A stretch of DNA of 64,000 nt, taken from positions 8,184,001 through 8,248,000 of the forward strand of contig OZ176056.1 in assembly GCA_964247055.1 (NCBI GenBank), in the 5' to 3' direction. This DNA is from Paragordius varius. Its lineage: Eukaryota > Animalia > Nematomorpha. The notes beneath the pieces were generated by a model. The model did no database searches. It saw nothing but the letters and a program-made list of their open reading frames with translations, and was not told the origin of the DNA. Below are positions 8,660-62,490 of this stretch, piece after piece. The position numbers were made by a program, and so were the translations under genes. How positions within the stretch are numbered: the stretch's first letter is position 1; every line of letters starts with the position of its first letter.

Positions 8660-11600
8660 TCATCTTTCATCTACATTAATTTCTCCTTGTTCCTCTATAT
8701 TAAAAGATCTCTAAATAAATAACTTGTTCAATGATTGGGAAATAAAATTCTTACCCAAAACATTCAAGACTATTTAAATTTATGATATGTCAAGTTAAAT
8801 TGATAATTACAATCATTAGTTTCCAATGCATCTAGACATATAAAGATATATATTCTTCAAAAAATGCCTGATATATATGATTAGCTTTATTTATAGTTAG
8901 GGAATTTTTGACGAAATGATCCAAAATACATCAAATTATTTTTTTACATATAAATTAACTATTTAAACCTTGACTTCATATAGCTAAAATTGATTCTTAA
9001 AACTAATCCTTGCATTAATTAAATTTCCGTAAAATATTTAGTTAATTACTGATTACATTTTCATTTTTTATACGAAATGACATCTTGGGGTACAGAGCCT
9101 AAAGTGATAAACAAGTTACTGTGAAAGTTGTTATGATGAAAATTTATTATGAAACTCTCTTCTCCTGTATTAGATAAACACTTAAAATATTTACAGTTTT
9201 TTTTCTATAATGCCGAATTCGCTAGCTCTATACATTTACAACTGTGCATTAAAGTTGACGATAATCAAAAATTTGTTTCAATTTCCAAAGCTGATTTTAT
9301 ACATTTTTTGCCTGTGTTATACATGATATAAAAAAATGGCGGCGGAAAAGTTTGAGATGAGGATTTTTGTACAATTTTACATTTATTTCAAAAAAATTAT
9401 CATGCACCTCAAGGCATAATATAAATTTGGCCTGGCCAAATGCTAAAAGTATTTTTTATGATATTTTAATTTCAGACGGTCCTCAAGTATAAACATAAAA
9501 TGTCATAACAAAATTTTTATCTTCCAAAAATAGGAAATTTTTGATTATTTTGAATTTCATAAACAGGGAGCAAATTTAGTGGGTCGAAAATGTGGATTTT
9601 GTCATTTTCCTTTAAGATTAATGAAAATCTTTTTAAAATTGGTGGTTCGCTTTGCGCATAATGATAAAACCAAAAAGTCAATTAAAAAACTATATTTTAT
9701 GAATCATTATGACTATTCTAACTAAATCTACATATGCATTACCAAGATTTAAAAAAAATATATGGACGTTTGATATAAAAATTTACGCTTTTATGTAATT
9801 ATATATGATAAATTAGAAAAAGTAAATCACATTCTGTTTCAAATTCGTAAATTTTCGGTACATGGAAAAAAGCAATTCAACAATATTGTAAATAGTATAT
9901 GTTCAAGCAATAACTTTAAAAATTAAATTAAACTAACTTTGGACAGCACTAGCAACCTCTAAAATTAGATATTAAAACCGTAAATTTTTATATATAATTT
10001 GTCAAAAAAGAGTTTTACCTACTATTTCCTCGTCAGGTGCTAAAATATAAGGTAAAATAAAATATTGAAAATTCACATTGGTAGCGATTAAATAGGAGAA
10101 GCACAAAATATTGTCCCTTGAAAATATGTTTAAATAATGGTATGTAAGCTAGGTTTTTTATATGGCTTAAAGGTTCAAATATCTTAAAATATTAGTTCAG
10201 AAAATTTCGTATCTTACTTTTTACCTTAAATGTTACTCAATTTTAATTTTTTCACCGCTGGCGATTAAAATTTTAACTCTTTTTTATTCACATTCAACCG
10301 TATTATTACAATAAAAATTACTTTTGTAAAAGATTTGTGATTATAATGCTTTTTTTACAAGTTTAGTTTTTACATAAAAATATGTGAACAATAAATTTTA
10401 AAATTATATGTTTATGTATTCTGAGTAGGGTGGTTAAGTATTACCAGTTTTATATGTATTTTCAATGTAACTGTAACCACTTTTAAAAATAACCAAAAGT
10501 TTTTTTAACATATGTTAATCAGGTAATATAAATATATTGGTACAAAATTATAGTAATGTAAATAAATAATTAGTTAACAATTAGTAGTATGAAATTTAGT
10601 TACCATAAGATTTTATATATTAAAATAGATTTAAAAGCACATAACTTAATTTGGATTGTTGATATATAACAGGTATGTCCATAATCACTTCATTTTTAAA
10701 GACAGTCAGACCGGTTTTTTTTATTAAATTTAAACCTAAAAATTGATTTTTAAATTAATTACTGATGGTCAGCCTAAAAATTGATTTTTAATTTCATTAC
10801 TGATATAAGTTAGTAACAAGTATTATAGTTTTAAAAACGATTATCTATAACTATAATAATTTAGAAAACAGATCCCATTTTTGTAACCCACAATGCAATT
10901 CAAAAATCAATGGTATTCTAAATGGAGTGAAAATATTTTTTAATCATATTATACCTTTCACATGTATTGAATCCTCTAATATTTTAAAATGTTATCCAAT
11001 AAATAATGCACAAACCTGCCACTCTTTGATTCAATACTTAAAAGTTTTTTAGAATAAAATCGAACCTTCTATTTTTTCTTCCATTTCTAAATAGAATTTT
11101 ACTAAGTATATTACCTTCTATATAATCCTTTAGATCTTACATGATTCTGTATTTAAATTACTTGTAAGCTGTTGTCTTAAAGCTATAATAATCAATTTTA
11201 TCAAAACTAAATAAAGTTACCACTCAATACATCTGGTAATTATGAAATGTAAATAAACTTGATTGCTTCAAATCTAATCGATAAAAAAATAAAATAGAGT
11301 TATTTTTCAAATTAATATAAGCACTTTGCCATTTAATTTTATTGATATCAATATTAAAATCATTATATGAATTTTAAAAACGATTCTTAGGTTATGTTTT
11401 AGCTGACATTTATGAGTGAATTTATTTTATAAATTCCAAAACACACAAAGTACACCTAAAATTTTAATATAATACAGTATATATAATAAATAATAAAATT
11501 AGACCAACACATTATAAAAGTTACATTCAAATTTATTTAAAATACACTCATAGTTTTTGACAGTTGTTTATTTATTTCTAACTCAATGGTAACCTTTAAG

Positions 11601-14600
11601 TATAAAATATATGTGAATTATATATATAATATATATATTTTACAAATTTTATTAAATAAAGGATAAATAAGGTTTTAAAAAAGTATGTTTGTTATTTTGA
11701 AAAAAATATTTGTCTTTTAGTTCTACGTTTTGTCTGAAAAATTTCAATTTTTACTGTATATTCTATTAAAACCTTTAAAAATCTGAGGAACGTTTGTTTC
11801 TGCTGCCCCAACCACTATTGATTATATTGTATATTTATGCCAAAAAATACTTCTGGTTAAATAAGATGCTCCTTTTATAATATAAAATGAATATAGAAAT
11901 TATTTAATTTACTGGTAGTCAGAAATTCGGTTTCTACATTAAAAATTTTGGTATATATTAATATTTAGGATGCTATTTACAAAAAGGCTTAAATTATGCA
12001 ACACTTTTATACATTTATTTTGTAAGTCTTTCAAATTTATATGATTTTTTAAGAAAACTTTGATTGATTAAAAGTTACCTTCATTTATCATACTTGCTCC
12101 TGAGTAGTAAAATATATTAAAAAAAATATATTTACCTTGTTCAACTTCATAGGCAGCTAATCCAAATGTAATATATAGTTTTAATAATCTATATTTATAA
12201 AATTGAAGAATATAAATTACTTTCGACACGTGAATAGTATAAAAATATAGAAATTTATTTAAAACGTATCATAGAATAAATAAAATTCGCGAAGGGTTTC
12301 GGACATTTTAACGTGTGTCCGTCCTCAGCGTAAAAAAATATATAAAAATTAGTATGGATAAAATCCTGATCGTAAACATGTCAAACATGATGCTTAATGA
12401 CCATATGATCTCAATTTTAAATAAAGGCCTAAAATTTGCTATTTCTCCCTCAGTTGTGCCAGTAGAACAAATTATTTCAAACGTTGAAGCAGGTCTCTCT
12501 CGTATAGATCCAAAAATAGCTGACATCATCAGAATGCAAGTCGTATCTATCCTTAAGAACAACAAAGATGAAAGAAGGCGATCAAACATATCACGTGAAC
12601 AATATATAGCATTAAAAGAGTTGAAAAATAATAATGATATTTTTATTTCAAACTCTGACAAAGGAAACCAAGTAGTTATAATGAACTTGTTAGACTATAA
12701 TCAAAAAATGCAACATATTTTAGAAGATACATCCAAATATAAAAAGATCACACGATACCCTTTTAACACATTACACATAAATGTTAAAAAAATGATAAAA
12801 TCATCTCCCATTCCCTCACATTTACACAATTCGTTAATTCCTCAATGCCCTATTAATCCCAGTATGTATGGTGTCCCAAAGACGCATAAAACGGATGTTC
12901 CACTGCGTCCAATTGTATCCACCAAAAATTCATCTTTATATGGTTTGGCACAGCATTTATCAGAATATTTGCAACCCTTCTTAAAAAACAAATTAAAAAA
13001 TTCGTTTGAATTTATAGATAAAATAAGAGATATACAAGTAGCTGAAACCGATTTATTAATAAGTTTAGATGTGGAAAGCCTCTTTACCAGTGTACCCCTC
13101 AAGGAGTTAACCCATCTTCTTAAAGATTTAAAGGTGGATGCGAAATATATTTCCCTGATTGAATTTTGTATAAATAATAATTTTTTTGAATTCAATGATA
13201 ATTTTTACTTGCAGAAAGACGGGTTACCGATGGGTTCCCCAATTTCCCCCATTCTAGCTGATCTTTTTATGGAAACATTTGAAAATCAATTTATATTAAA
13301 TTATTTTTTAAAACCAAAATTTTATACCCGGTATGTGGACGATATGTTTATCATTTGGCCACATACAAGAACTGATCTCTCCTTATTTTTAGATTATATA
13401 AATTCGAATCCTTTTAACATACGGTTAACCGTCGAATTTGAGGCTAACCGATCACTACCATTTTTAGATGTTCTAATTACTCGAAATGACACAACATTGT
13501 CATACAGTTTTTATCAAAAACCCACTCATTCCAATACCTATTTACATAAAAGTTCTTACCACAACTCGTTACAAAAAAAGAATGTTTTGAAAAATCAAAT
13601 CTTTCGCCGGCTTAAACTGACAGATAATGCAAATAAGAATATTATAACAGAGCGTTTTGTGGAAACCTTTTTAAAAAATGGATATTCTGAAAACGATATC
13701 CATCGAGCAATTTTATCACTAAATAATACCCAAGAAAACACAAAAAATTATAAGTTTTTTATTTCATTACCATATATACAGAACATCACCGATCGTAATA
13801 GCTCACACTTTAAAGCAATTTGACATTGGTGTGGGGTTTAAACCAGGTCTTAAATTAAAAACTTTTTTATCAAATAATAATAAATCCAAATTAAATTATC
13901 CAGGGGTGTATAAAGTTCCATGCGAGTGTGGCAAGGTATATATCGGCCAAACCGCAAGGAAAGTTAAAACACGCCTGAATGAACACAAGTATAACATAAA
14001 GAATGGAGATTTTAAGAGTTGTATTGCGGAACATTGTTGGAAGGAAAATCATAATGTTTCCTTTGACAATGTCAGTTGCATTACAATTTTCAATAATAAT
14101 CAAAGGCTTACGCGGGAATCATTAGAGATTCTCAAAGGAAACAACTTTAACCGAGAGGAGGGACAAAAGATGAGTGATATATGGAAAGTCATTCTTGATG
14201 ATTGATCCCATATGGACTCTTTTGTTTTCCACTCAAAGTTGTTGTCCATTATTTATTTTTTTTTAGTATATGGTTATAAATTTAATTAATTGTTTGTTGA
14301 CATGGTTTAAACCACTCTCAATGACAAATGGTTTTAACTTATCATTTGTTAAGAGAAAAGAAACATCAATAAACGTTTTTAAAAATTGTATATAAAGCAC
14401 CATTTTATCCATACTAATTTTTATATATTTTTTACGCTGAGGACGGACACACGTTAAAATGTCCGAAACCGTTCGCGAATTTTATTTATTCTATGATACG
14501 TTTTAAATAAATTTCTATATTTTTATATTTATAAAATTCGAAAACCCAAATTTAAAAAATTTGAAGCAAAAAAAGTCAACTTCCAAAATAATATTTTTAA

Positions 14601-17600
14601 GAATGTTATGGGTAATTTAGGAAAAAAACTAGGCTGACTTAAAGTGAAAAGTATATTGCAAGTTAAAACGCTGTCTTAGGTTAGGGTGATTTTTAGCACA
14701 ATCATAATAATTTTTGTTCATAAATAATATTGTTTAAAAAGTGCAGTTATGAACAAGTGTATCAAAAATTTAATTTTATATATCGTGATTTGACGAGCTT
14801 TAAGGTTTCATACCTGAATATTGGTTAACCGATTTAAACCCAAAACCTATTCAAATGTATGGTATTATAACAGAATTTTTTTTTGCCTTATAAGGTTATT
14901 TTTTACCCTTTAAGAGCGATAGACATAAATGAATTGATTTACCAGTTGACAATTTTTAGTAATAAATATCATTGGACTAGTGAGCATCAAAATCACTTTA
15001 AACGTTTGCCATAAATTATGCTAATATCTGGCTTGAGTTATACTAAGAAAGTTATTTCAGCGCAAAATATTTTAAATTAAAACATCTTTTTTTATTGATT
15101 TTTATCTTTTTTTGTATATTCTTAAAAATTATCAATATTTTTTTGAAGAAATGGCGGGAAAAGCAAAAAATTCCGTTCGGCATAACAAAAATATTTTTAT
15201 TCCAGAAAATAATGGCATTCCATAATAGTTTTTTGTCCTTTTTACCGCTGATATATTTATCATAAAATTTTAATAAGTATTAATATATTAGAAAAATCGG
15301 CAAAACTGGAAAAATGCCCTTTTTAGCGGAATTTCTTAAAATATTATTGAGTATATTATACCTGATCTTAATTGCATAGAAACTAGTTAATATTATAATT
15401 AAAAATTATAAACATTGGTTTTTTATGCCATAAAAATGATCAAGGCAATTCACACTTTTATCTTTAATTATATAATTAATACCTGATTCATGGAGGCTTG
15501 CTCTAGCTATTGTTGTAAAAATTGAAACATAATTAAATCAAACAGTAATTTAAATTATACAGACAAAATGTAATACTAAAAGACAATTTTTATAAAAATA
15601 AAACCATACTAAACCTTAATATTTTGAAAAAAAATAATTCATAATTTTGGTTTGCAAAATCAAAAGAACTCGATTATAATTCAAAATCGTAACTAAGTTA
15701 TGAGGGAAAAAGTAAAGGTTTGAAAAAATATTGTTTTCTGCAAAAAAATTTGTCCTTTAGTTTTTACATTTTGTCTATATAATTTTAATTTTTATGATAA
15801 AATACTAATTAAATGCATAGAATACCCGTAGCAATCTCTTCCGGGGAATAGGATTTTTTGGGCATATCTATAGATATCATAAGGTAATGCGCAAAAACCG
15901 TAATTGTCTTCATCAAGTTTCGACTGTTTGGCTGGAGTTAAATCTTTTAAAAAATAGATTTTTAACACGCGTAAATTTAAAAATCAATATTTTCTCAATT
16001 AATTTTTTGAATTTTCTAATTTGGGCAACTAAATAAGAAGACAACTGATTAGCCAGAATTTATTATTTGGTAATAAAAAATGGTTTAAATCAGTGATTTT
16101 AGCCTGTTCGCATATACTCTATAATATACGGAAAGGAGAGGGGTCAGGGTGTATGAGAGAAATTTAAAAATTGGCCTCAATAAATTTTTAAATTATGAAA
16201 ATTGATGTTTTTCATTATATTTGGATATAGAAGGCGCCTTAAAATTACTTATTCTTTTTTTGATAATATCTGATAATACATTTATATCATGTTAGGAATT
16301 AAAAAACGGCAGAGAGCGAATATCAATATATGATAAATGAATTGAAGTTCGGAAAGATATATGTATAAAATATAAGAAAATTAGGTAGAGAAAAAATTAT
16401 AATCTAAATATTATATATAAACGGTAGCGCTAGAAATGTTAAACCGTTATATACAAATAAACAGAGAAATATGTATAATTTTTAAATAAAAACCCAAAAG
16501 ATATTGAAAGGGCCAAAACTTATTGCAAATTAAATGTGGTTAATTATATTTTTTGATATAATATATTAATCATACCATCTTCAGGAGTTTCTAAAACAAA
16601 TTATATATAATATATTTTACCTTCAGGCGCTGGTCTTTTTACTAATAAATATAAATTATATTTTGAATCTGTAATAATGAATGAGTTTCCTACCAAAAAA
16701 CGGGAGGGGGAGTGAAAATAATAACCAAATAATTTTTACGTCCAATATAAATATATTTTAAATATGCATAGTGTCAAAGGAGTCCAAATGTGATTCGGTT
16801 CCAATTTGAAAAATAAACCTAAAAATTGATATTAAACATTCAAATGTGTTTTGGGAGTATATCAGAAATGATACTTGGTATTTTAACAGATAATTCGATA
16901 ATTTATAAAGCATGATTTAACAAAGTATTTCACAAATCTTGCAAAATTTGTTTAAAGTTAAAACGTGTTAAAAATATGAAGAATTATTGTTTAGTGTAAA
17001 AGCGCTTAATTTTATACAGTGACTCATTAATATTTTTTAAAAATATTAACTCTTCTGAACCGGCCGGAAAGAAATATTAATTAGGTTCCTAATTTATTAA
17101 TTATTATACATTCTCATTTTATATATCGTATCTGTTAAAATTCTAAAGTCATTTTCGAATATACGTCAAAAACATCAGACTGCTAAATCAGTTTCTGGGT
17201 TCATTTTGTTATATGCAACGTAATCCTCAAATTATATTTTCTAACTTGTAATTCTGCTTAATTTTGTCATCCAAAAGTATTAAAACTCATAATACAGTTT
17301 AGACTCTCCCTTTCCTGCTATAATTTAAGTTTAAGGACTCAAAGGTATTAAAAACCACTTATGGCTGACAGTGATTATAGAAAATAGCGCAGTTTCAGGA
17401 ATCGAACTCTGACATATGTATAAAGTCCGGCGTACATCACTATACCATCACAAAATTAAAAAAAATACATGCAGATATAAAATATGAAAGAAAGATGGCA
17501 ATACTTAATTTGTATATTTTTGTTTATAATGAATATTACCGAACCCTTGATTGGGAAACATATTAAAATATTAAAAAACTTTTAAACAGAATCCCTTACT

Positions 17601-20600
17601 CCAATTCCGTATTTTTTCCACCCATTTTGTCGGGTGAGCGAAATTCCAATAATCAATTAATTTAAATTATATATTTATTTATAAAAATTAAGATTTTTAT
17701 TGGGTTTAAAAATTCATACGTGTGCCAGACGGTCCAGGTTGGGGATCATTCATTGCTGTGTAAAATAAAAAAAATTGTTAAAAAATTTAAAAATATTAAA
17801 ACGTTTGATGGTTGGTAATGAATGTATTATTTTTCTTCAAAGTAAGAGAAATATTATTGGCTCGATATAGAGTCGTTAAGGGTGAAATTAAAGTAGTGTA
17901 TACTTTTATAAATAAAAAAAAATAGTTACAATAAAACCAAGGAAAAAATAATTTACGCTTTCTTAAATACATTTGCATTTATTTTTTTGTCATTTGGTGA
18001 CAAGCTGATAATTCTATGTAAAAAAAATTTTGTTGCAATAAAACCGAGTAGCTAAAACATATTAAAATCCGTAGAATTGTAGATTTGACATTATTTTGAA
18101 TTGTGCCAGGCATACAAATGTCGGTCGCTATTACTTTTCAAGTATCTTTTTCTCCTTTTTTCCGTAACTTTGCTATTGGCATACCATAGATTTGCAAAAA
18201 AAACTTGGAGATTTATTAATTTTTATTTATAGATCTTACAGGAAGATGCTGCTCCCTCCAAGACCTGCACTACTCTTGAAGCAGTATTTACAGTTTGGTC
18301 GAGTGTGTTTGCACTGTTGGCTGCGGATGATAGACCCACTAAGAATAAAAAAAACAGCAATTGCAATAAAAAATATAATTTTTTACTAATCTAAAATTGA
18401 TAAAGAATTATATTCTACCCATAAGCCACAAATTGAAATATGGTTTCTTAATTTATAAAGAGCTTAAGAATATTCGGATCGTGAGAATGGATTATTATGG
18501 GAAGGTAAGTTATAAACTTTGATTTTTATTGATTTAAAATTAATTTGCCTGTTAAATATTGGCGGAAATGATAAAGTTAGATTAAAATAAAATTTTTAGC
18601 GGTGTTAAATAACTTTAAAGGGTTTAAAATTTATTACCTCCAACGATGCCTAAACGAAAAATATATATATATATGTATATATAAATAAATAGGCATACTT
18701 TTCATAATTAATATATATGAAGATTATATACTTGAGGTAGCTATTGATACATTTATATTGTATTTAATTAAAATGGAATATAAAAATTGTTTTACCTGCA
18801 ACTCCGATGGCTAAACGCGCAACACTTTTTGGTAAATCATTCTTTATTTGTTTTCTTTGCGGTCGTGTTTTCTTTCGAGCATTGCTCGTTTTATGTTTCT
18901 GTTCTGGTTTCTGTAATCCAAATTATTAAAATGTAATAAAAATAATATTAACTTTTAAGATTTAAATAATATTTTTGGTTTCTGAACATAAGTAACATGT
19001 TTGGAAGGTATTAAATCCGCAAAAAATATATAAATAGAAAAAGTCAAACTTTTTTGTGGCATTGTAAGATAATTTTTTAAGGGATTATATGATATATTTA
19101 GTTAAAATATCCAATTTATGGTATAATTGATGAAAAGCGACATCCAATATATTATCACTCCATTACCTTTTAGGATAATCATATATCCCAGAGCGATTCG
19201 AAATTTGAATATCAAAAAAGTATTTAAGGTATCAATTCGATTTAAAAATATGCTTTTTTTATTCTTTAAGCGGATTATGCAAAAAAAATTTTTTAATACT
19301 CGAAAATTGTAAAAAAATCCTCATCTCAAACTGTTTTACCGCCATTTTTTTTCGCTAATGCAACAGACAAATAAATATATATTAAGGTTAAAATTTAAAC
19401 ATCTAGAAGTCAAGCAAAAAATATAAGTTTTTTTATTTAATGCATCAGAAATTTAAAAATTAATTTTAGCTAAAAACTTCCAAAAATGTAACGAAAAGAT
19501 CTCTGGGATAAAAGAAAGTTAATCTAGGACAAAAAAGTGAAAAGGTATTGAATTGTTTAAAACAATTTTGTATTTTAAATAACAATTTCAGGAGTTAAAT
19601 TGCATTTGGCATATTTTATAAGTTAGCGGAATAATTTTTTTTGGCTGATGTTATCATGCGCTACAAATAAATAAATTGAACAATATTTGTAATAATTATT
19701 ATACCAAAGAGGGCATCACATCTGCATTTATATGCTACATATATTATTAGTTGATAAATAAACTTTTCTAGCGATAAAATCCAAAACGTCCTGTTAATTA
19801 GTAGATAATAATATTTTTAAATGCTAACCTGAGTATCATTCGCTAAATCACAAAAATAATTCAATGGGCTTCGATTCAAAAGTTTTATAAAGGGTGCAAT
19901 TAACTTTATTACCTCGAGGAATGTAAAGGATGAATAATTTATGAATTAAAAATTTTTAATAGACTTTTATTTAATTCTTAAATTCCTATATATTTTATTA
20001 TAATCTTTTTCGAATCATCCTAAGGGTCAAAGAAAAATTTAATATACCCGAACAATTCAATTTATTATTTCTATAATCTTAATTATTTAGAGCTTGCCGT
20101 TTTCTAGCCGTTTTATACAACTAAATTTTATTGGCATAATTTTTCAATATTCCCAAATAGCATATACAGCAAAGGGCATGGCATATAGTTATTTTTTTAC
20201 TTAACATTATTAGCCAATAATAAAACTTTTTGCTGCATAAGCTATTTGGCATAATAAATGAAAAACTAGAAATGTATGCTTACTCATACTGTAATTTGAT
20301 GATAAAACCATGTAAAAAAAATTTACCATTGTGAAGTATAATGACTGTCTCGTTTCCATTAACCACTATTAATATTACATATATTCATAAGTATGCTAAA
20401 TTTAATTTAAATATATAGAATAGAGAATACCACCGAATTTCTCTAATATATTGACGTTTGCATTTGTGATTAAATCTAATCCGTAGCAGTTTTTTTATCG
20501 ATATTATATATTAAAACCTAGACTATTATAAACTAATAAATCCTTACGACTTGTGTTAAAACAGTTTAAAAATTAAAAGGCGCAATATTTTGATAATTAG

Positions 20601-21169
20601 CCAAATTTAAAAATGTTTATATAGGAAAACTTTGTCAACTAATATATTTCTGGGCGCTCTGCTAAAATTAATGATTAAAATTTTGCGATAAAATTTAATA
20701 TTGACCAAAACCTAGCTCTAATTTGGGGTATTTTATTAATCTGCATGATACCGAAATTCCTGCTTGAATACATTTAACAGTCATATAATTGGGTCTTTTG
20801 ATTTCTAAAAGAGTTTATTGTTATCAAACACTTTTCTAGGCTGTTTGATGGAATAACGTATAAATTTTAAATTAATAAATGTTTTGAACTGAGTACGAAT
20901 TTGGTGATATACTAATTTTGGCCTTAATCCAATGTCACAACTTTTTGAACCGAAAATCCCTTTTAAATCAATTCTAAGACTCAATTAATGGTTAAAATGA
21001 TTTTCTGATTTTTAATTATTTATGCTAAAAATTTTGTTTTAAAAATACGTATCAAAAATGTATAAAATGTACTAAAATATTAAAAAAAAGTCTTACTAGC
21101 TTGAGACTTGGCGATACAATTAGCAAAGGCTCCATATAATACAATGAGTAGTAGACGCATTAAAAACAT
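8660..21169 (-). CDS. Micro-exon gene MEG-A: secreted protein of about 330 aa with a coiled-coil segment
   Basis: Signal exon 21169-21097 (MFLMRLLLIVLYGAFANCIAKSQA, donor GTAAGA). Then AG/GT-bounded open exons: 20911-20897, 20804-20772, 20532-20518, 20442-20431, 20365-20327, 19842-19829, 18910-18796, 18338-18240, 17755-17720, 16641-16621, 16590-16576, 16269-16249, 15506-15483, 15382-15362, 14846-14814, 12156-12136, 12099-12079, 11933-11913, 11871-11851, 11814-11773, 11577-11548, 11232-11221, 11182-11162, 11135-11115, 11086-11066, 11036-11016, 10975-10955, 10257-10237, 10039-10019, 9958-9938, 8831-8811, 8769-8755, and terminal 8694-8660 (EEQGEINVDER*). Joined CDS is 993 nt with no junction stops. 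Single-gene linkage is inferred. Confidence 0.72.
12286..12334 (-). ncRNA. Inverted copy of the PLE hammerhead-like motif (CUU instead of GUU)
   Basis: Minus strand reads CUGAGGACGGAC...GUCCGAAACCCUUCGCGAA. It differs from the 3' copy at 12294 (equivalent to 14471). Confidence 0.55.
12354..14205 (+). pseudogene. PLE reverse transcriptase / GIY-YIG endonuclease ORF with one +1 frameshift
   Basis: RT motifs LDVESLFT, QKDGLPMGSP and RYVDD. Endonuclease GVYKVPCECGKVYIGQT...RLNEH. Removing one A at 13797-13798 joins the two ORFs as DRIAHTLKQFDIGVGFKP. Confidence 0.92.
14431..14479 (+). ncRNA. Minimal hammerhead-ribozyme-like motif in the PLE terminal repeat
   Basis: CUGAGGA-C-GGAC(loop)GUCC-GAAAC-C-GUU-CGCGAA: core boxes, a helix II and a GUU triplet. 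Helix III is vestigial, as in PLE minimal hammerheads. Confidence 0.65.
17387..17452 (-). pseudogene. Degenerate tRNA-like / SINE-head fragment
   Basis: A-box-like TGGTATAGTG and B-box GAGTTCGATTC are correctly spaced, and the 5' part resembles tRNA-His. No intact cloverleaf. Confidence 0.35.
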
Positions 21170-22204
21170 TATTTGTTTCGTATAATGAAAAATTAGTTAT
21201 TAAATTTAATGTTTAGTTCCTTTTGCTGTCAAAATTGTGAATATACAAAACTGTAAACAAACTTTAATAATTTTAATTATTAACGAACCTTTATTTTATT
21301 TAGTACAAAGGGTATTTCATAGATTTACCTATTTAAAATGCAAGGCTGTTATTATTGCAATTAAAACTTGAACTTTAAAATTAAATGATTGATTATAGTG
21401 TTAAATAATCATTTGATAGTATAAACAATTTCGAGTGAACTAATTACGAAAATGATTTGTGCTTGTTTTAAGGCAATCGTATAAATTAATTTATGAAATT
21501 TGGTATTTTTCCCATTTTATCAGTAAGAACTTTTAGACTGTAAAGTTATATCAATATAAGAATCTCTAAAAGTATATACCTTGGTTTTAAAAAAACTTTG
21601 CATGAAATTATTTAACATCAGATTTATTAATTGTGACATATTTTTGGTATTGATTAATTATATTCATTCTTTCATGAAAAAATAACAATATTGGTCATTG
21701 GTAAACTTGCTATTCGAGAAAATGGAAATATTATAGAAGAAAGAATATCTTTAGCATTGTTTTATAAATTTTAACTAATAGCGATAGAAATTCCTTTGCC
21801 TGCAAGCACCACATTATTTACTATATTGATATATATTGCATTTTTAACACAATTTCGAACAAAATGATATAAATTCGATTAATAGACTTATAGTTGGGTG
21901 TTAACGATTATTAAAGTTGTTACCCGTAAAAATTTAAAGCCAGAACAAATCCTTAAAAACGTTACCTCGATTTTTTAATATGCCCTATAATTTGTTTCAT
22001 TCTCAAACATGTTTTAGACAAGTTATAAACCTAAACGGGATATAAATTTTTTTAACATCTCTTGCATATTAGGTGTTGATTTCATGAATATCAATCAATA
22101 TTTAGACACCCAAATATACACGGTACCAAAATTCTTTCTCTGCCCATTTCAAAGAAATTGTAAAATATACTTCTAATTTAGGTCAAATTTCATTAAAAAG
22201 AATG

Positions 22205-25200
22205 TTATTTATTTAAACTTTTTTCAAGCTCCATAAATCCAGAATAATCAAACAACTCATTTAAATTTTTAAGTGGTGAATTATTATTTTCAGTCTTTAC
22301 CACTGTCGATTTGGGTGATATTGATGCTTTGGATTTTAAATCAGTTTTGCTGCTAATTATGCTTGGAGTAATGATACATGTCGGACAATAGAATTCTTTA
22401 CTTTGTTTTCTAAATATTATCATAAAAATCAAATCTTAGTCCATAAAAATCGGTTAAATTACATGAATGGGTAACTTTAGTTAATTATTAAATTGTTAAA
22501 ATTTATAACAGTGATGGATTTCGTTACACCATTTATCTTTATTTGATCGAAATCTAAATATCATAAAAATCAAATCTTAGTCCAAATTACATAAACGGGT
22601 AAGTTTATTATATTGCAATTATAATTCAGCTAAAATTATATGAATTTATTGTGAATTTTCGATTACTACTAGTAATCTTTGTCAAACGTTAGAAAATAAA
22701 ATTAAACTATAAACTAAAATTTAAAGTATAAAGTAAAAATGTTAATTATTAAATTGTTAAAATTATAACAGTGGATATCGTTACACCATTTATCCATATT
22801 AATCAAAATCATAAATAGAGGTATAGTTTTTTTATATTCTATTATAACCCGCAAAAATCCGACTATTTATAAATAGAAAAACGCGGCGGTCTAATATAGA
22901 CCATATTCAAATTTTTATGATGAAATCTTGAATTAAAGGTTTTGATACTTGATACACATCGATATTATTCAAGGGCTTTATGATTTATAAATTGAAAATA
23001 TATAATATACAATGTAAATTACTTGGTTTGATGCAGTAATTGTTTCTTGCTCTGTATGTATCCTAAATAAATTATAAAATACTCAAAGTAGATTTAAAAT
23101 AACTTTTAATGAATTCATTCGACCCATCAATTAAATATAGGCCTGCTTGACAAAAGTTTTTATTTAGCGATGATGAAAAGCTTTGGGTTAGAAAAAACAG
23201 GTATCAAGCGTCATATAACAGAAATAATTTTAAAAAATCGAATAAATAGTACCTTTAAAACACGAGAATTAATCAGAACATATGATAAATCGAACGACAG
23301 AGTTTTAAGTAGTAAACAACTATATTATTTAGCTCTTTTTGCTAAAATTTGATTTAGTTTTCTAAGTTTTATTTTGATTGCATCCAAATATATCTCAAAC
23401 GCCAGATTTTAAGATCATAAATAAATATCCAAATATCGTCAAAATACAATCAAATTACTAAGTTAATTTTATTTACCATAATATATGTTTGCCATTTTTT
23501 AGCGATGATTAAAACACAAAAAAATATGGTGCAAAAAGTGCTTTCCAATTTATGATTTAAAATCTATTTTACTATACAATGTATATTTTAATTACATTGT
23601 TAAATATTTTTAATAAATATAGTTTATCATATTTTTTATGAATTTCGAAATGATGCATTTAGGTTTTATTGAAATTTTTTTTAGCGTAATAAACGCAAAT
23701 TTTGCGATATTTTAATATGGAGCAGCTAGCAGGATAATGGTTATAACTTTGTTAAATATCCTTCGTATGGCTCAAACCAAAAGTACCAATAAAATTTCCA
23801 GAATATATATTTTTAACAATATGTTTTTTTATACCTTCTGATTGTGCATTGTGTATTTGCACCCTTTTTAATTTTTATAAGTTTAAAATGAATTCAATAT
23901 TATCGGCACACTAAAAATAATAGCAAAAGTCAGAAATAGAAAGTTATATCTATATAAACAAGTTTGGAGTCATAAGATAATCTTTTTTAGTAAATTTTGT
24001 TTTTTTCATGCATGAAACCATGTGATTGAAAGCGGCAAGATATTCAAGGATAGTATTATATTATTATATACTATAAATTTATTTAAAAAATATGTTTCCT
24101 TTTAGTAATTATTAATCTTTTTCTTTGTTTTGTAGAGTTTTTATTTTATTTGTATGCTAAGTATGTAATTTAAAGAGTAACATAATTCTTAAGTCATCAA
24201 AAATCATTGTTATACAGATCTCTTTTTTTTTCTCTACTCCTTGGTGCCTAATTATTTTATTTTTACTAGCCTAGCCATAATTTCTTTATATTTTTCCTTT
24301 ATGATTGCCAGACAGAGTAAAATATCAATATTTATAATTTATCCAAATTAACAACATTTATAAAGATTACTCTTTAATTTTAATTATTCTAGATATTTAT
24401 TTTTTGTAAAGAGGGTAAGTGAGAGGGAAGGCAATGGCAAACCACCCTCGTTTATTACTGCCAAAAAATAGTTTTACTATATGAACTTAACAAGACTTTT
24501 CAAAGTTGGATGCTGGAACGTACGTTCCTTAACATCAACCAAACAGGTGATAATTGAAAAGGAAATGGAAAGATTGAACATAGATATACTGGGTCTAACG
24601 GAAACCAAGCAAAAAGGTAGCGCGAAAGTACAAAACGAAAATTATACATTGTTAAGATCGGGGAGAGATGACCAGAAATCTGAAGGCGTTGCAGTATTAA
24701 TAAAAAACAAATTAAATAAAAGTCTCATTAGTTATACACCATATACACCCAGAATCATGAGTATTAGGCTGAATGCCAAGCCACTTAAATTTACATACAT
24801 AGTAGTCTATGCTCCTACGTCAAACGCTCCCAAAGAAGACATAGAGGACTTTTATGCAACGTTGCAAATAGTTTTGGATGAAACGAAGAAAGGAGATATG
24901 ATTATCATAGGAGGGAATTGGAACAGCAAAGTTGGTAGAGGTAGAGTAGATCAAATAGTCGGGCCATATGGATTGGGAGAACGAAACGAGGCCGGGGAAG
25001 CACTGATCAATTTTTGTCAAGAAAATGAGATGATGATAACCAACACATGGTTTCCACAACACAATAGGAGGTTATACACATGGACCTCTCCATGTGGTAA
25101 ATATAAGAATCAAATTGATTACATAATGTGTCCTCAAAAATGGAAAAGCTCTATAATCGATACCAAAACAAGCAAAAGCAGCGATTGCTCTAGCGATCAT

Positions 25201-28200
25201 GATCTTCTAATAACCAAAATCAAACTTAAAATAATTAAAAATAAGGTTAAACAGATATACAGATATAATTAGAACAGAAACCAAAGATAGATTAGGAAGA
25301 TTGGACAATGGATGTAGCTCAGAACAATTATGGGGAACGATAAAAAATGTTGTTAATGAAGTGGCAAAAGAAAAAGTGCAGAGAGTAAAGAGGAAAGATA
25401 ACAAATGGATATCAGAAAAGAGTATAGAGATAGCAGAAAAGAGGAGAAAAGCTAAATCAAGAGGTGATAATAAAATGGTAAAATTATATAACAAAGAATT
25501 TCAACGACAAACAAGGAAGGATTACGAAGATTTTCTTAATAAACAATGTCTGGAAGTGGAATTAAATAACAAAAAAGGATTAATGCAACCAATGTTCCAA
25601 AAACTGAAGCAAATGACTCATAAACCTTTTATATCATCACAAAAGATTAAAAAAGAGAATGGCACCATATTGTGCAAACAAACAGAAGTACGAGAAAGAT
25701 GGAAGGAATACACCCAAAAACTCTATCAGGCTCCTCAAGCAAAGGTGTTGCAATTAAAAGAAGAAGAACGTAATCCAGATATATTAAGAGAGGAGGTTGA
25801 ATTAGCCTTAAAACAAATTCCTAACAACAAAGCGATGGGATTAGACAATATCCCAATAGAGTTCATAAAAGCTATTCCCGTTGAAAAGTTACACCAGTTA
25901 TGTCAAAAGGTGTGGGAAACATGTGAGTGGCCAAACGATTGGGCATCATCTGTATATCTCCCAATATATAAAAAAGGAGATGTACTCCAATGCGAGAATT
26001 ATCGGAACATATCTCTTATTAGCCACGCTAGTAAGGTCTTACTAAAAGTAATACAAAACAGAATGCACAGTATCATACAGACAGAAATACCAGAAAATCA
26101 AGCCGGATTTATGAAGGGAAAAAGCACAAGAGACCATATCTCAAACATGAGAAGGATAATGGAAACATCAAAAGAGTTCCAGAAAGAATTATACATGTGT
26201 TTTATTGATTACAGACAAGCATTCGATTCAATTAACTATGACTCCTTATGGGAAACATTAAAGTTAGTAGGGGTATCGTCTCACTTAATAAGATTGATTA
26301 GCTCTCTGTATGTAAAACAAAGAGCGATTATTAGAACACCAGCGGGGGACACAGACGAAATACCAATCTTTAAAGGAGTCAGACAAGGGTGTTGCTTATC
26401 CCCTTATCTGTTCAATATGTGCACAGAAATTATAATGAGGAAGTTGGATGGTAAAAATATTGGAGTAAGAATAGGAGGGAGAACAATCAATAATTTAAGG
26501 TTTGCAGACGATACCACTCTTATAGCTGAAAGTGCAAATGATTTGAAGGAATTGATTGAAGAGATTCGAACGGAAAGTTTGAGGTATGGTCTTAGGCTTA
26601 ATCCTAACAAAACCAAAATATTATGTACAGGAAAAAAGCCTACAATTATAATAGAAGGGGTAGAAATAGAAATAGTTAAACAGTTAACGTTTTTGGGCGC
26701 AATAATTTCAGAGGATGGGTCTTCAACTCCTGACATCAGAAAGAGAATAGGATTGGGTAGAGAAGCGATGACCAAATTAATAAAGATTTGGAAAAACAAA
26801 AGCGTAGGAGTTGAAACCAAAAAAAGATTACTCTACTGTTTCGTTCTCCCGGTCACCACATATGGATGTGAGAGTTGGACTCTCAGAAAAAAGGACAAAG
26901 AAAGGCTCATGGCTTTTGAAAGGAGTTGCTGGCGTAGGATGCTAGGATACACTTGGAAGGATAAAATTAAGAATGAAAATCTAACTACAGAAATAAAACC
27001 TAAAACAAACATCATGGAGATAATTCTAAAAAGAAAGTTAACATATTTTGGTCATGTCATGCGATCGAATTCTCTGGAGAAAGATACAATGTTTGGGAAG
27101 GTAGAAGGGCAAAGGAAACGAGGCCGACCACCGATGAGGTGGTTGGATATGATAAAGGAAGAGACCAAAATGACACTGAAAGAGCTCAATATAGCGGTTA
27201 AAGATAGAAAAAAATGGAAAGAAATAGTTAAAACTATATCCAAAAAGTCGTTTACGACTTAGGAAAAATCAACCAACCAAATCCGACGCGCATCTATGCA
27301 GCTGCGTAACAAGCATCATTAAATAAAAGGCTTTATAAAAATTTTAAATAGGATTTTAATAGAGAATTTCGCAAAACGATCCCTCGCTATTTATTTTTAG
27401 AATTGGGTTAGATTACTGGTTTGAAAAAAAAGTATACCCTCTAGTAATATTTTACCTTTGAGAGGGTTCCTGTAATGCCATACCATAAAAGATATACAGG
27501 CAAGTAATAATATAAAGATGATAACACCAACTACGGCATTAACCCCAGATTTTTTATTTGATTCTTTATGATTGATTGCTTGTGCTTTTATAGGTAAGAT
27601 ATTTGATGTTTGAGAAACGCTGTTTTTATTATTGGTGTTTAGTTTTTCGGGTACATTGGCATTAGTTGTAAATTTGTTGTTCTGAGTCACATTACACAAT
27701 CGATTCAAGAATATATCGTTAACTATGTTTCTAATCTCAGTTTTATCGTATATGCCCTTTAAACTTTCTACTCGAAATTTTTCTGGAGATGTTAATGCCT
27801 TCAATTCTTCAGATGTTTTCGGTTTTATACAGGATACCTCGTCCCCGAAAGGTGATTTAAATTCATATAACAAAGGCGAGCTTGCCATCGATAGGATAGA
27901 ACAATCACAAGCAATAACACTATCTATCATAATTGTCAGTAGTAAAAATTTACGTAACGATGTTTTATTCTTTGCCAACGATGGGAAAACATCTTTGGAA
28001 AATGTTACCAAAGGATTTTGAGACAAAGTCAAGGTTTGCAATGTGTCTGGCAAATTGAAAGATATAACATGTATTTGATTATTGGTTAAATCCAAATTAT
28101 TCAATTTGGGTAGATTAACGCAACTAAAACAATCCTTGTCAATTAATTTAATGCGATTAGATCCCAGGGATAAGGTAGTAAGTATAGGCGCTTTGCTGAA

Positions 28201-31200
28201 AGCATTACCCATTAACTTCTCTATATAATTACCTTCGATAGCAAGAAAAGATAACGAAGTAGCAAAATTTAACAGAAAATTTTCACGAATTTCTTTCAAT
28301 CCACTATCCTTAATTGTGAGTTTTTGCAGCATGGTATATCCTTGTAAAAAATTGGTGGGGATTTGTGGTAACATCACATTTTGAAGCGTTAGAGTTGTGT
28401 TTGGCTCCAGTTTAAACTTGGAATTATCCAATTCCTTTATAATGGTATCATATTCGAATTCAATGCAAGTTATATGCCACAAATACGATTTAACATTGAT
28501 TGCTTCAAGATCCCAACAGTCGCAGGGCGGACCAACTGGACAAGCTTTTGGGTCAAACACTCCATTAGGTAAGCGGGGTTCTTGATTTGCAAAGGACGGA
28601 GATGTCGGTGCACAAAATATATCGTTGTTTTGAATCGCAATCTGTATGGCTGATTGTTGATTCAATGACACTGGCCATGTACAAATAAAGGAGTCGGTTA
28701 ATGCCCTAAAACAAAAAAAAAGGATCCTTTAAAAAATGATTTGTTACTGGTAATAAAGATCAGAATTTAGTACTACCTAGAACATCAATGATATTAACGG
28801 ATATAAATATTTTTAGAAAATGTTTTATCTCAAATTCTTTCAAATATGTTTATTTAGTTAGATTTTTATTGAAACTATCGGGATGATGCTAATCTTCAAC
28901 ATATAATATGATCATTAATTTAAGAGTGAGACCATAAAGCCTACTACTATTTGGCGGGATCTGGTGTTTTGCCTCACTAAAAAATACTTTTTTAAAAAAA
29001 TCTAAAAATGCCCAATCTTTTGTAATACATTAATTGTAAAAAAATACCTACCTTTTGTCATCAAACGACATGTTTTCACTACTTTGCACATAGTATAAAA
29101 TGATTGGGCTATTTTTACAACTACACACTAGGGAACTACCCATAAGACTGAGTTGGACTTTACCGATTTTATCTCTTTCTTGCACCAAAGATATAAGTTT
29201 CGGTTGGATCCAATAAAATGGGTTATTATCCAAAAGCAAGACTTTAAGTTTAGGAGGCAAGGCGCGCAATGAATCAAACGTATTATAACTCAATTGACAT
29301 TCAGATAAATCTAGAATTTCAAGGGCGGGAAAATAATTTTTTGGTGCAGATGGCAGACCCTCACCCAAATCGGATAAATAAGCAAAATTATTTCCACGCA
29401 AAAAGAGTTTCGTAAGGTGTTTAAGATTCTTAAACGCATCAAAGAATATGGCTTGAATTGCATTATTAGATAAATCCAATGATACTAACGCGGACAAAGT
29501 CGAAATCTGTGCATCATTAATGGTTGTAAATCTGTAATAACATAATGAATCTCATTAAAATATTTTTTCCTTTTGTCATTGATTTTTTATTTACAGTAAA
29601 AAATGTAATTATACGGACAGTTTTAAAAGACAAATATTTTCTAAAAAAGAATTCCATAGTTTTCAAGAAAGGGTATTTACAACAAGTTTTTTCATGTAAT
29701 TGTCTGCTTTTTTTCACTAGTTATATATACATTTACCACATTTTCTCTATTTGATATTTTCTCATTTTATTCTAATCTTGAGAAAGGTTAAACAATATAA
29801 CCGAAAATTAGAAACTCATTAAATAAATATTTATTTTTTAAAGATTATTTATGCGCGTTTTTTTGCCATTCATTTTAACTATTTTAATTTTGTTATCTAT
29901 TCACTTTGATATAAATTAAATTAACCTTTTATTTTTAAATAATAACGTTTTCGGTGTCAGATTACACAGTGTTACTAAAATTACTCAATGACATATATAT
30001 TTTGATAGAAAAATGTATCGGTATTATGAGGATGTTTTTGGTTTTGGCCCGAGTGATATAAGAAATACTATACTTTTGTGTCTGTGACCAAATGGCGAAT
30101 TTCCGCACATTTTGTTAAGTTATTTTTTTTGGTGAAAGCTAAATAAATGCTTGTCCAAAATAAATATTCTACACAAACTACATATGAAATGCAAAATAAA
30201 TTTTTATAAAATATAGTGAGCTACGAAAGTCTCAATTTTTAGAAGCGTTAATTGGCAATTTTTCGATTAAGATCAAGGCCAAGTCGAGACTATTCTATAG
30301 ATTTAAATATATGCCAAATTCAATAAAGTTTTTCTCAAAAAATGGATATTTTTAAAAATTCAATTTATAGCAAAATTTTGGTGAAGTGAGCTTTATGGTA
30401 AATTGACATAATGAAAACGGTATAACAACACTATAAGATATTATATTTATTGTAAATTCGATTATTCTAAACATTTCTATCACTATAAAATTTCTTTTGC
30501 TTTTAAATTTGGGTGAAATTTTGTTACAAAAAACAATTTATATTTTACCTAATTTTAAAAACGGAGGATTATTTTAATAGTAATTCCAAAGTGATAGTAA
30601 TGATCATCATTAACTTATATAAAAAAAGTGGTTTTTAATATAGCGCTTTTATACTGTTTCATCAGGCCTAGAATGAAGTATTCAAAAAAAATTGCTAAAA
30701 ATTTAATTTTACAGCAAGGTATGCTTTTTTCTAAAATTTTTGATGCTATAGATTATTTATTATCGTGATTTGGCATTTTTGTGACTTATAAATGTAATAA
30801 AAGCTAATTAGGGACAGTTGCTAATTTTGCGATCGATATTGATCGATTGCCACAAAAATGCAAATAACTTTCTAGATCGTAGCCTAAAAACGCACCATGG
30901 GAATCCTAATATATTTATCTATCAGGTTATGCTTCATTATGTATTTTTATAATCCTCGATTTCGGACATAGGGCAAATCGAAGCTTTTATTATTCATCCC
31001 ATACGCAATGTTATATATGAAAATTTAAATAAAAAAATAGCAAAATATATATTCGAAAAATTACGACATTTTAAAAATAAAATGGCATATTAGTTTTAAA
31101 AACAAACTTAAAACTAAGTAGTTCAATGTAAATGGTGTCAGAATTAAGTAAGTTCCAAAAATAACTTCCTAAGTTCTTTATATTTTGAACGGCTCCAAAC

Positions 31201-61900: not shown

Positions 61901-62490
61901 ATATATTAAATATTAACATCTTTCTTTATAAAGATAATGAAACAATTCATTTGTTTGAGCGATTGAAACCATACCTGGGTAAATTTATATAATTTTATGA
62001 TGTAAAAGATTTAGCCAGACTTGTCTTTTTTTAAAATTTGGAAAATTGCTACATTGTAAGCTGATGTGGCCTTAATTCGTTTAATTGAATCAAATTGATA
62101 ATTAAAAAAATATAAAGACATATACTGATTTTTAAATCGAAATCGTTGTCAATTAGTTTTATTTAAATTTCCTCCAAAAAACATCACAGTTTGTAAACCA
62201 TTAATTCAATTGAGAAAATTTTTACCGTTTTTTCTTAGACTTTTGATACGATCTTAAATTTTATATAAATGCCTAATAGACAATATTACCCAATACATTC
62301 CGGTCAATGCTACTCAAGGTTGTATTTATGTTTCCTTTTGATTATAAATTTTTAAGTATGTCTATTTACTAAAAAACCAAATTAATGTTGGTTTTAATCT
62401 CAATACGCGGTATTAATTCAAATATTTTATTTGCAGATCACAGACAATTGGTAGCGAATTCAACAATGACACACTCAAACAAAGAGCTTA
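51099..62490 (+). CDS. Micro-exon gene MEG-B: secreted, N-glycan-rich protein (3' end unresolved)
   Basis: Signal exon 51099-51237 (MMNFSMKYLACFTLIALTRMSFG..., donor GTGAGT). Open phase-1 symmetric exons: 51321-51344, 51425-51463, 51558-51581, 51811-51834, 51870-51911, 53677-53691, 53768-53797, 54968-54973, 55420-55473, 55554-55574, 56926-56958, 58299-58319, 59054-59071, 59142-59183, 61495-61524, 61934-61978, 62280-62318, 62437-62490. Weaker candidates: 55618-55632, 57796-57821 with 57850-57862, 58207-58236, 60781-60801, 62735-62746. Confidence 0.68.
51599..51648. repeat. (AT)n microsatellite
   Basis: About 25 perfect AT units inside a MEG-B intron. Shorter arrays lie near 34835-34861 and 58907-58934. 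Confidence 0.95.
51940..53010. mobile_element. Second, more eroded copy of the CACTG foldback element
   Basis: Begins ACTGTGTGCAAAA...TTTCATGAGATAGCTTATGA and is colinear with 6157-7325. Lies in a MEG-B intron. Confidence 0.7.
54411..54669. mobile_element. TA-flanked 21-bp-array MITE, shorter copy
   Basis: TA-CCATTTACAGTTC ... GAATGG-TA, with GGGTGAATTTGAATT units. Confidence 0.7.
55735..56440 (-). pseudogene. Degenerate mariner transposase
   Basis: Minus-strand remnants SGRP (about 56300), GKWVRPL (about 56150; mariner WVPHEL), WDQSRMIY (about 55940; WDQKGVIY) and HGKIILLHENAS (about 55810; LLHDNA). Many stops. TIRs not identified. Confidence 0.75.
58351..58505. repeat. 155-bp imperfect foldback hairpin
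   Basis: Arm blocks GCTTATTTCACACTATA, TTTGCAACACAG and GTATGGAAAAAA are matched by exact reverse complements around a loop of about 30 nt. Confidence 0.85.
60083..60372. mobile_element. Degenerate hAT (Charlie/Buster-like) MITE
   Basis: CAGAGGTGTTCAATACACGGCCC ... AAACTCCTG termini. A similar end remnant lies near 32491-32520. Confidence 0.4.
60973..61261. mobile_element. TA-flanked 21-bp-array MITE, third copy
   Basis: TA-CCATTTAAAATTC ... GAACTGTAAATGG-TA, with AATTCACCC units. Confidence 0.7.

Follow-up and report, generated by a model that had tools for sequence, protein, structure and literature searches.

On the minus strand of the window (i.e., the whole stretch of 64,000 nucleotides that was analysed), AT-rich DNA without apparent genes probably holds one protein-coding gene of at least 21 exons, with its start at 21169 and its end near 8660 (alternatively at 9061). 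Its signal-peptide exon and the small AG/GT-bounded exons that follow it, proposed in the initial annotation, were found again over this whole range with good splice sites, and the suggestion that ORF finders miss the gene also held, tiny symmetric phase-1 exons being present. The small exons are flanked by sites of the ttag/gtaa type and their frame is continuous. They are also set apart by composition (41% GC and 22% T, versus 23% GC and 40% T in the introns), and the introns themselves fall into a long class, of 100 nt to 3.2 kb, and a very short class, of 26-40 nt. The chain would be spliced by an ordinary GT-AG spliceosome.

The defensible model has 20 exons plus a last exon that is ambiguous, as are several weak exons, with a CDS of 696-732 nt (232-243 aa); allowing for the possible further exons, the product would have about 232-268 aa. 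Eleven of its exons are exactly 21 nt long; the larger figures first given (about 30 exons, 16 of them of 21 nt, and 993 nt of joined CDS) could not be reproduced. The view that nearly all exons are of phase 1-1 stands for 17 of the 19 internal exons, which measure 12-99 nt and start at codon position 2, and falls for two asymmetric early exons, the 14-nt exon 2 (from phase 1 into phase 0) and the 115-nt exon 3 (from phase 0 back into phase 1). The latter is open in phase 0 only and must be preceded by one or more exons, since an in-frame stop lies 18 nt upstream and it has no Met. Joined, the 20-exon core is 661 nt long and stop-free, and either terminal option closes its frame, the end of option B being the one originally given. 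Exons of 36 nt or less hold 47-59% of the CDS, by model, and the 115- and 99-nt exons about 30%. About 4-6 further exons are possible, these weaker candidates scoring no better than background. As to the candidate at 19340..19354, chance alone is expected to give about 2 strong-site matches in the locus. A free dynamic-programming chain added dozens of weak exons, some of them inside the retroelement, and was left out of the model as overfit.

Table. Features of the putative micro-exon gene and its surroundings (positions are those of the window)
Feature	Position	Strand	Description
Exon 1	21097..21169	minus	73 nt; ATG, signal peptide, phase-1 donor GTAAG
Exon 2	19829..19842	minus	14 nt, phase 1 to 0; joins exons 1 and 3; best bridging candidate, site score 14.0
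Exon 3	18796..18910	minus	115 nt, phase 0 to 1; Lys/Arg-rich stretch and start of hydrophobic Gly-rich segment
Exon 4	18638..18649	minus	12 nt, phase 1-1; within hydrophobic segment; score 16.9
Exon 5	18240..18338	minus	99 nt, phase 1-1
Exon 6	17720..17755	minus	36 nt, phase 1-1; encodes linker rich in Pro and Gly; score 20.3; phase 1 is its sole open frame
Exons 7 and 8	16576..16641	minus	16641-16621 (21 nt) and 16590-16576 (15 nt); 30-nt intron between
Exons 9 and 10	15362..15506	minus	15506-15483 (24 nt) and 15382-15362 (21 nt); 100-nt intron between
Mobile element	12238..14527	plus	reverse-transcriptase-encoding; terminal inverted repeats of about 130 nt, 99-100% alike
Exons 11 and 12	12079..12156	minus	12156-12136 and 12099-12079, 21 nt each; 36-nt intron between
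Exon 13	11773..11814	minus	42 nt (two heptads), phase 1-1
Exons 14-18	10955..11182	minus	five consecutive 21-nt phase-1 exons, one heptad each
Exons 14-18, individually	11182-11162, 11135-11115, 11086-11066, 11036-11016, 10975-10955	minus	introns of 26, 28, 29 and 40 nt
Exons 19 and 20	9938..10039	minus	10039-10019 and 9958-9938, 21 nt each; 60-nt intron between
Terminal exon, option A	9061..9098	minus	38 nt including TGA; no AATAAA close downstream
Terminal exon(s), option B	8660..8831	minus	candidate exons 8831-8811 (21 nt) and 8769-8755 (15 nt) before the last exon
Last exon of option B	8694-8660	minus	35 nt with the TGA; encodes an acidic peptide; AATAAA motifs within the next 30-60 nt
Possible extra exon	19340..19354	minus	15 nt, phase 0-0, basic peptide; score 14.1, at the level of core exons
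Further candidate exons	20241-20227, 11933-11913, 10257-10237	minus	weak, unconfirmed

The exon chain is statistically real. The test proposed at first, which simply counts every AG-(21 nt, no stop)-GT, is too crude to discriminate (21 minus-strand and 18 plus-strand instances, compared to 12.6±3.6 in shuffles). Once strong sites are required, i.e., [TC]AG before the exon and GTA[AT] after it, the density is no longer equalled in shuffled or opposite-strand sequence, which had been named as the outcome that would speak against the gene: there are 12 such 21-nt exons on the minus strand, one on the plus strand and 1.7±1.3 (maximum 7) in 300 third-order Markov shuffles, and all other 4-kb bins on both strands of the window hold 0-2. 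All 12 are stop-free in phase 1, while phases 0 and 2 are open in only 3 and 6 of them, respectively, a rate at or below chance. The lengths of strong-site exons on the minus strand favor multiples of three (78, versus 31 and 40 for the other remainders), with 54 versus 44 and 47 on the plus strand, and phase-1-open exons divisible by three number 50 versus 25±5.8. Splice-site matrices built from one half of the gene also recover the other half (9 exons versus 2.1 expected, and 9 versus 3.6).

The predicted protein starts with a signal peptide that looks cleavable (residues 1-24, judged by hand-made hydrophobicity and -3/-1 rules), which has a basic n-region, a 10-residue hydrophobic core (Kyte-Doolittle 2.0 over 19 residues) and small residues at -3/-1, with S-Q-A preceding the phase-1 donor. 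Then come, in this order, a basic stretch of about 35 residues with a net charge of +8, a Gly-rich hydrophobic segment, a Pro/Gly linker and an acidic amphipathic coiled-coil-like helix. The hydrophobic segment (about 20 residues long, at residues 58-80, Kyte-Doolittle 1.73) is a borderline case of a membrane-spanning segment and may serve as a membrane anchor, the +8 charge on its N-terminal side being a poor fit to a cleaved signal peptide combined with a type I anchor. Only one cysteine occurs in the core model, within the signal peptide, leaving the mature protein without any. We infer that the gene is expressed and that its product enters the secretory pathway, to be then either anchored in a membrane or secreted.

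Each 21-nt exon corresponds to exactly one heptad of the acidic helix. In residues 144-220, all of them encoded by micro-exons, 15 of the 23 L/I/V/M/F occupy two positions of the heptad (shuffling test, p<5e-5), the hydrophobicity spectrum has its maximum power at a period of 3.5-3.6 residues (p=0.0008), and the heptad register is kept through 7-8 exons, across introns of 26-915 nt. The first heptad exons are poor in hydrophobic residues, i.e., a weak start of the helix. This symmetric layout of one heptad per exon most likely records a helix that was built and lengthened exon by exon, and would permit exons to be gained, lost or skipped with the frame and the helix register intact.

Searches for relatives consisted largely of single-exon queries, of limited power, and found no relationship to any family of micro-exon genes (MEGs): exons 1, 3 and 5 queried singly matched no Pfam family, and no protein among 1.84 billion representatives contains the exon-3 peptide. 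The spliced junction of exons 3, 4 and 5 had no match in metagenome contigs, tblastn found no paralogue within the window, Rfam and tRNA scans gave no matches, and the exons are not tandem DNA repeats of one another. Separately, an LRR ORF gave matches of only 27-28%, to a beetle and a nemertean.

Two RNA-labelled runs bearing the same species label, both very small (19-30 million letters), had no reads on the 115- or the 99-nt exon, and their lone match in the locus spans 33 nt (17463-17495). Both searches of sequencing runs for the gene brought up DNA-like runs, along with small RNA-labelled ones that had no matching words. One run first seemed exon-only and proved to be DNA, its reads covering introns identically. 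Among the approximately 42 differences listed in DNA runs none falls in an exon, a weak signal given that about 3 would be expected; exon 5 is free of listed polymorphism and the intron directly upstream of it has four.

Schistosoma micro-exon genes, as attributed to DeMarco et al. 2010, reportedly diversify secreted proteins by exon skipping. That the gene at this locus works in the same sense, with a secreted product and a regulated skipping of symmetric exons that generates a pool of variants (e.g., at a host-parasite interface), seems to us unlikely. It would agree with the signal-peptide exon followed by symmetric phase-1 micro-exons, and with the ending of all 21-nt exons in G or A, which leaves junctions stop-free for any combination of skipped exons. 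Such junctions are, however, no evidence of use, because the AG/GT splice consensus gives them automatically. The layout itself fits the published definition (PMC4350168, 10.1101/2023.06.21.545858), so that the likeness to these genes noted in the initial annotation stands as far as architecture goes. Against the functional reading, the isoforms it calls for are without RNA support (runs, protein representatives and metagenome contigs all being blank), family similarity is lacking for the exons queried in Pfam and for the exon-3 peptide, exons of 36 nt or less hold just about half of the CDS, the second hydrophobic segment may anchor the protein, and the part encoded by micro-exons is a regular heptad helix, unlike a variable low-complexity peptide. 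By analogy with the cytoplasmic tails of chicken BG, the helix and the possible anchor look more structural than like a variable antigen.

Another interpretation, which we hold to be improbable, is that a real chain survives in a micro-exon gene copy that is decaying or has fallen silent, nonfunctional or unexpressed. The RNA-labelled runs examined have no transcripts of it and no public protein has the exon-3 peptide, as would be the case for such a copy, and a retroelement with 99% identical terminal repeats recently inserted in the gene. These runs are, however, very small, and the element, which does not belong to the gene, sits in the 3.2-kb intron 10 and leaves 82 nt before the next exon. 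Moreover, 20 exons share one stop-free frame with their GT-AG sites intact, and the listed polymorphisms are all outside exons.

Still less probable is a split into two tandem genes at the retroelement-bearing 3.2-kb gap, with a 5′ gene between 21169 and about 15362 and a separate heptad gene between 12156 and about 8660. This largest of the gaps (3205 nt) does divide a portion with larger exons from one made almost wholly of 21-nt exons, and two or three tandem genes had been envisaged earlier, but a recent insertion accounts for 2.3 kb of the gap and exon 11, right after it, has a strong acceptor as well as a strong donor, as in an internal exon. One gene is likelier than two or three because the locus offers no signal-peptide-like start exon with a phase-1 donor besides exon 1 (21169-21097), nor any other convincing start exon, and the frame is unbroken throughout. 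The possibility that AG and GT are so common in DNA of 25% GC that stop-free chains can always be found is very remote: the crude counts are indeed similar on the two strands (21 and 18) and an unconstrained search readily takes in dozens of weak exons, but with the splice-site consensus there is a roughly sevenfold excess, which is particular to this strand and locus and survives cross-validation, and the significant heptad periodicity of the joined product is not what chance exons would yield.

If the single micro-exon gene modelled here is transcribed as such, a class of genes escapes standard annotation in this genome, and the micro-exon design, already described in blood flukes, aphids and chicken BG, would have emerged once more, in a further animal lineage. 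The alternation of 21-nt exons with introns of 26-40 nt is hard to explain in terms of splicing, because neither exon nor intron definition, in the usual sense of these terms, easily handles such spacing. At the protein level, one heptad per exon means that the length and surface of the helix could be altered by whole heptads, leaving frame and register undisturbed. It is tempting to speculate, although we think it doubtful, that the gene belongs to a genome-wide class in a non-flatworm parasite, made of secretory-pathway helical proteins with one heptad per 21-nt phase-1 exon and introns of 26-40 nt, in which regulated skipping would produce helices graded in length or varied in surface, a micro-exon variation system with an origin independent of the schistosome and aphid ones.

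In its predicted build the gene resembles the micro-exon genes of blood flukes, its exons being tiny and frame-neutral. By definition, the bulk of the coding sequence of these genes lies in very small symmetrical exons (PMC4350168), with a modal exon of 15 nt in S. mansoni and introns of 0.1-5 kb (PMC4350168, 10.1101/2023.06.21.545858). Their families are reported as restricted to platyhelminths; our literature searches brought up no description of micro-exon genes from Nematomorpha. Shared with them are the N-terminal signal-peptide exon, the many very small multiple-of-three exons spread over more than 10 kb, the orphan protein and the oversight of the gene by automatic annotation. Their functional hallmarks are alternative splicing and secretion, whereas the likeness here is one of gene layout alone. 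The present gene differs in having no sequence similarity to them, in belonging to a non-flatworm genome, in its modal exon of 21 nt and its many introns of 26-40 nt, in holding about half of its CDS in exons of 36 nt or less, and in its possible membrane anchor and regular heptad helix.

The bicycle and KQY/KHI cassette effector genes of aphids also combine a signal peptide with many micro-exons of a single phase (PMC9168663, PMC7495047), and are large genes for small orphan proteins as well; bicycle exons start at codon position 2 (PMC9168663), which corresponds to the intron phase 1 seen here. In contrast to bicycle genes, CYC motifs are absent here because the mature protein has no cysteine, and with neither group is there sequence similarity; an exon amounts here to a heptad, and the gland expression of the aphid genes has no support at this locus.

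Chicken BG, of the butyrophilin family, builds its cytoplasmic tail from many 21-nucleotide exons, one heptad each (PMC4046983, PMC5938342). Unlike BG, the gene described here belongs to an invertebrate, has no Ig-V ectodomain, no Pfam domain in the exons queried (1, 3 and 5) and no detectable homology, places only about 35 basic residues before its hydrophobic segment, and has exons that are not recognisable as DNA repeats, whereas the 21-nt repeats of BG cluster at 80% identity. Nevertheless, both have runs of 21-nt exons, with one heptad of an alpha-helical, coiled-coil-like tail in each exon, in both this tail comes after a signal peptide and a hydrophobic segment, and in both the first and last residues of the heptad are encoded jointly with the neighbouring exons.

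On the minus strand the locus opens with an ATG at 21169, followed by a 24-residue signal-peptide-like sequence and a phase-1 GTAAG donor at 21097, and downstream of this exon come short, comparatively GC-rich blocks bounded by ttag on one side and gtaa on the other. The initial annotation had read these blocks as a minus-strand chain of small splice-bounded exons, and this claim is borne out under a strong-site criterion ([TC]AG before the exon and GTA[AT] after it): the minus strand has 12 strong-site exons of 21 nt and the plus strand one, while 300 shuffles under a third-order Markov model average 1.7±1.3 (maximum 7), and all other 4-kb bins of the window hold 0-2 each on both strands. The control suggested earlier, shuffled or opposite-strand sequence with any AG...GT, does not discriminate, as the minus strand has 21 hits to the loose pattern AG-(21 nt, no phase-1 stop)-GT, the plus strand 18 and shuffled sequence 12.6±3.6. 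All 12 strong-site exons are stop-free in phase 1, compared with three in phase 0 and six in phase 2, the estimated chance of a stop-free 21-nt frame at local composition being roughly 0.57. Strong-site exon lengths on the minus strand are divisible by three in 78 cases versus 31 and 40 for the other remainders, a dominance not seen on the plus strand (54 versus 44 and 47). When, to guard against circularity, splice matrices were trained on the 5′ half and tested on the 3′ half, nine phase-1-open symmetric exons passed the threshold versus 2.1 expected; the reverse direction gave nine versus 3.6. The strong-site, bin and cross-validation counts thus place the exon chain far beyond chance and make it specific to this strand and locus, and that it is no product of chance is close to certain.

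Judging from sequence, this is very probably a genuine micro-exon gene that had not been annotated before, and our model of it, a core of 20 exons plus one of two terminal exons (see table), is probably correct as stated. The core exons measure, 5′ to 3′, 73, 14, 115, 12, 99, 36, 21, 15, 24, 21, 21, 21 and 42 nt, followed by seven of 21 nt; joined, they give 661 stop-free nt, and both candidate endings close the reading frame. The 993-nt CDS of the initial annotation was not reproduced. Exon 3 (18910-18796) is open in phase 0 only, lacks a Met and is preceded at 18 nt by an in-frame stop, and therefore requires upstream exons; exon 2 (19842-19829; 14 nt, excellent sites) takes the frame from phase 1, in which exon 1 ends, to phase 0, and from exon 4 onward all are phase 1-1. 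The predicted product has 232-243 aa, or 267 aa with four further candidates (20241, 19354, 11933, 10257), yet extra candidates are indistinguishable from noise, since chance alone should give about two strong-site hits within the locus. Earlier counts of 16 exons of 21 nt and about 30 in total come down to 11 (perhaps 13-15) and 21-27, respectively. An unconstrained chain search badly overfits.

The exons have 41% GC and 22% T, the introns 23% GC and 40% T. Introns between adjacent micro-exons measure 26, 28, 29, 30, 36, 40 and 60 nt, and elsewhere 100 nt to 3.2 kb. At 10955-11182, 12079-12156 and 16576-16641, introns of 26, 28, 29, 30, 36 and 40 nt are interleaved with 21-nt exons; exons and introns this small fall under the sizes usually deemed comfortable for exon or intron definition.

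Features of the gene, its predicted product and the surrounding window
Feature	Position	Strand	Remarks
Last exon, option A	9098-9061	-	38 nt
Last exon, option B	8694-8660	-	35 nt; AATAAA motifs behind; 3′ limit is that of the initial annotation
Optional exons ahead of option B	8831-8811, 8769-8755	-	
Reverse-transcriptase (RT)-encoding element	12238-14527	+	Opposite to gene, within largest intron
Non-LTR retrotransposon	24481-27262	+	Endonuclease and RT ORFs
Leucine-rich-repeat (LRR) ORF	27397-28671	-	Intronless, 424 aa; adjoins non-LTR retrotransposon
Ty3-like retroelement, pol region	44248-47934	+	Three ORFs; protease, RT, RNase H, integrase domains
Putative signal peptide	Residues 1-24		
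Strongly basic stretch	Residues 25-60		Net charge +8
Glycine-rich hydrophobic segment	Residues 58-80		Top 19-residue Kyte-Doolittle mean 1.73, borderline membrane span
Polar segment, then Pro/Gly linker	Between hydrophobic segment and residue 144		
Acidic C-terminal part	Residue 144 to end		Net charge -9; only 21- and 42-nt exons

The product is most likely a secretory-pathway protein with an acidic helix to which each exon would contribute one heptad. Of the 23 L/I/V/M/F residues of the acidic part, 15 occupy positions 2 and 6 of the heptads that the exons encode, a clustering equalled in none of 20,000 shuffles; hydrophobicity power has a sharp maximum at 3.5-3.6 residues (p=0.0008), and the register is kept over introns 26 to 915 nt long. 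Since this periodicity was not used in choosing the exons, the register is independent evidence that they are coding and belong together. The peak at 3.6 fits a strict coiled coil no better than an amphipathic alpha-helix. A cleaved signal peptide combined with an anchor would place the basic stretch outside the cell, contrary to the positive-inside rule; the protein may also form a hairpin of two spans with the acidic helix extracellular, or be wholly secreted.

A single gene is the economical reading of the chain. No start exon of the locus other than that at 21169 combines a signal-peptide-like sequence with a suitable donor; exon 11 (12156-12136), past the largest gap, has strong sites at both ends and resembles an internal exon; and the reading frame runs unbroken throughout, all of which disfavours the two or three tandem genes initially entertained, even if two genes divided at the 3.2-kb intron are possible.

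All matches to the locus in the run search span introns as well as exons, so those runs are DNA, and small RNA-labelled runs under the same species label share no words with the locus. Reads were compared over 15300-21250. The RNA-labelled runs X6 and X8 have nothing on the 73-, 115- and 99-nt exons, though at 19-30 million letters of contigs such runs are too small for blanks to indicate silence. About 42 substitutions and indels are listed in this stretch, none in exons, where about three would be expected (exons making up 7%), which is at most suggestive. Two runs labelled as other organisms, X5 and X11, are low-depth DNA (depth 2-5) with contigs identical to the window over the stretch, introns too, and DNA of the window's species is thus seemingly present in those samples; a host-parasite pair, contamination or mislabelling seems to be its source. 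A search of 1.84 billion representative proteins found none with the exon-3 peptide, metagenome contigs lack the spliced junction of exons 3-4-5, and tblastn with the predicted protein found no paralogue within the window, its right edge (62061-64000) included.

Outside transposon remnants the window has 23-30% GC, and it contains several retroelement ORFs; the GC-rich block at 44-48 kb is due to the Ty3-like retroelement. The RT element inside the gene has plus-strand ORFs at 12315-13823 and 13831-14205 and lies 82 nt from the next exon, leaving the exons intact. The near identity (99-100%) of its terminal inverted repeats, 100 nt with a further 32 nt adjoining, marks a recent insertion; inverted ends are unusual for an RT element. 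The stretch 17400-17495 looks tRNA-like to the eye and may be a tRNA-derived repeat: an X6 contig (depth about 104) matches 17463-17495 with three mismatches, and ARAGORN and Rfam make no call there, the tRNA and Rfam scans having come back without hits. Among 5.8 billion proteins, just two are related to the LRR ORF, and weakly so (27-28% identity).

A literature search found no paper tying horsehair worms, or Nematomorpha, to genes of the micro-exon type. Schistosome micro-exon genes (MEGs) have a signal-peptide exon, carry most of their CDS in symmetrical exons of very small size and, by alternative splicing, give rise to pools of variants that are secreted; platyhelminths are said to be the only group that has them (PMC4350168; 10.1101/2023.06.21.545858). 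The likeness drawn to MEGs by the initial annotation stands for the exon layout. However, only about half of the present CDS lies in exons of ≤36 nt, MEG introns measure 0.1-5 kb whereas many here are tiny, and searches with single exons show no sequence relationship. That exon skipping generates combinatorial protein variation here too, as was proposed by this analogy, is possible but seems unlikely.

In chicken BG genes the coiled-coil cytoplasmic tail, which comes after signal peptide, Ig-V domain and membrane span, is spread over many exons of 21 nucleotides that each encode a heptad (PMC4046983). The heptad per exon is shared with the present gene, which, however, has neither an Ig domain nor homology to them; compared with each other, its exons show no recognisable DNA repeats. 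In the bicycle and cassette-effector genes of aphids, a signal peptide goes with many micro-exons, all starting at codon position 2 (PMC9168663, PMC7495047), the same phase as here, but their CYC motifs are missing from the predicted protein. By its sequence, then, the predicted gene resembles the MEG, BG and aphid systems in layout and is a member of none of them.
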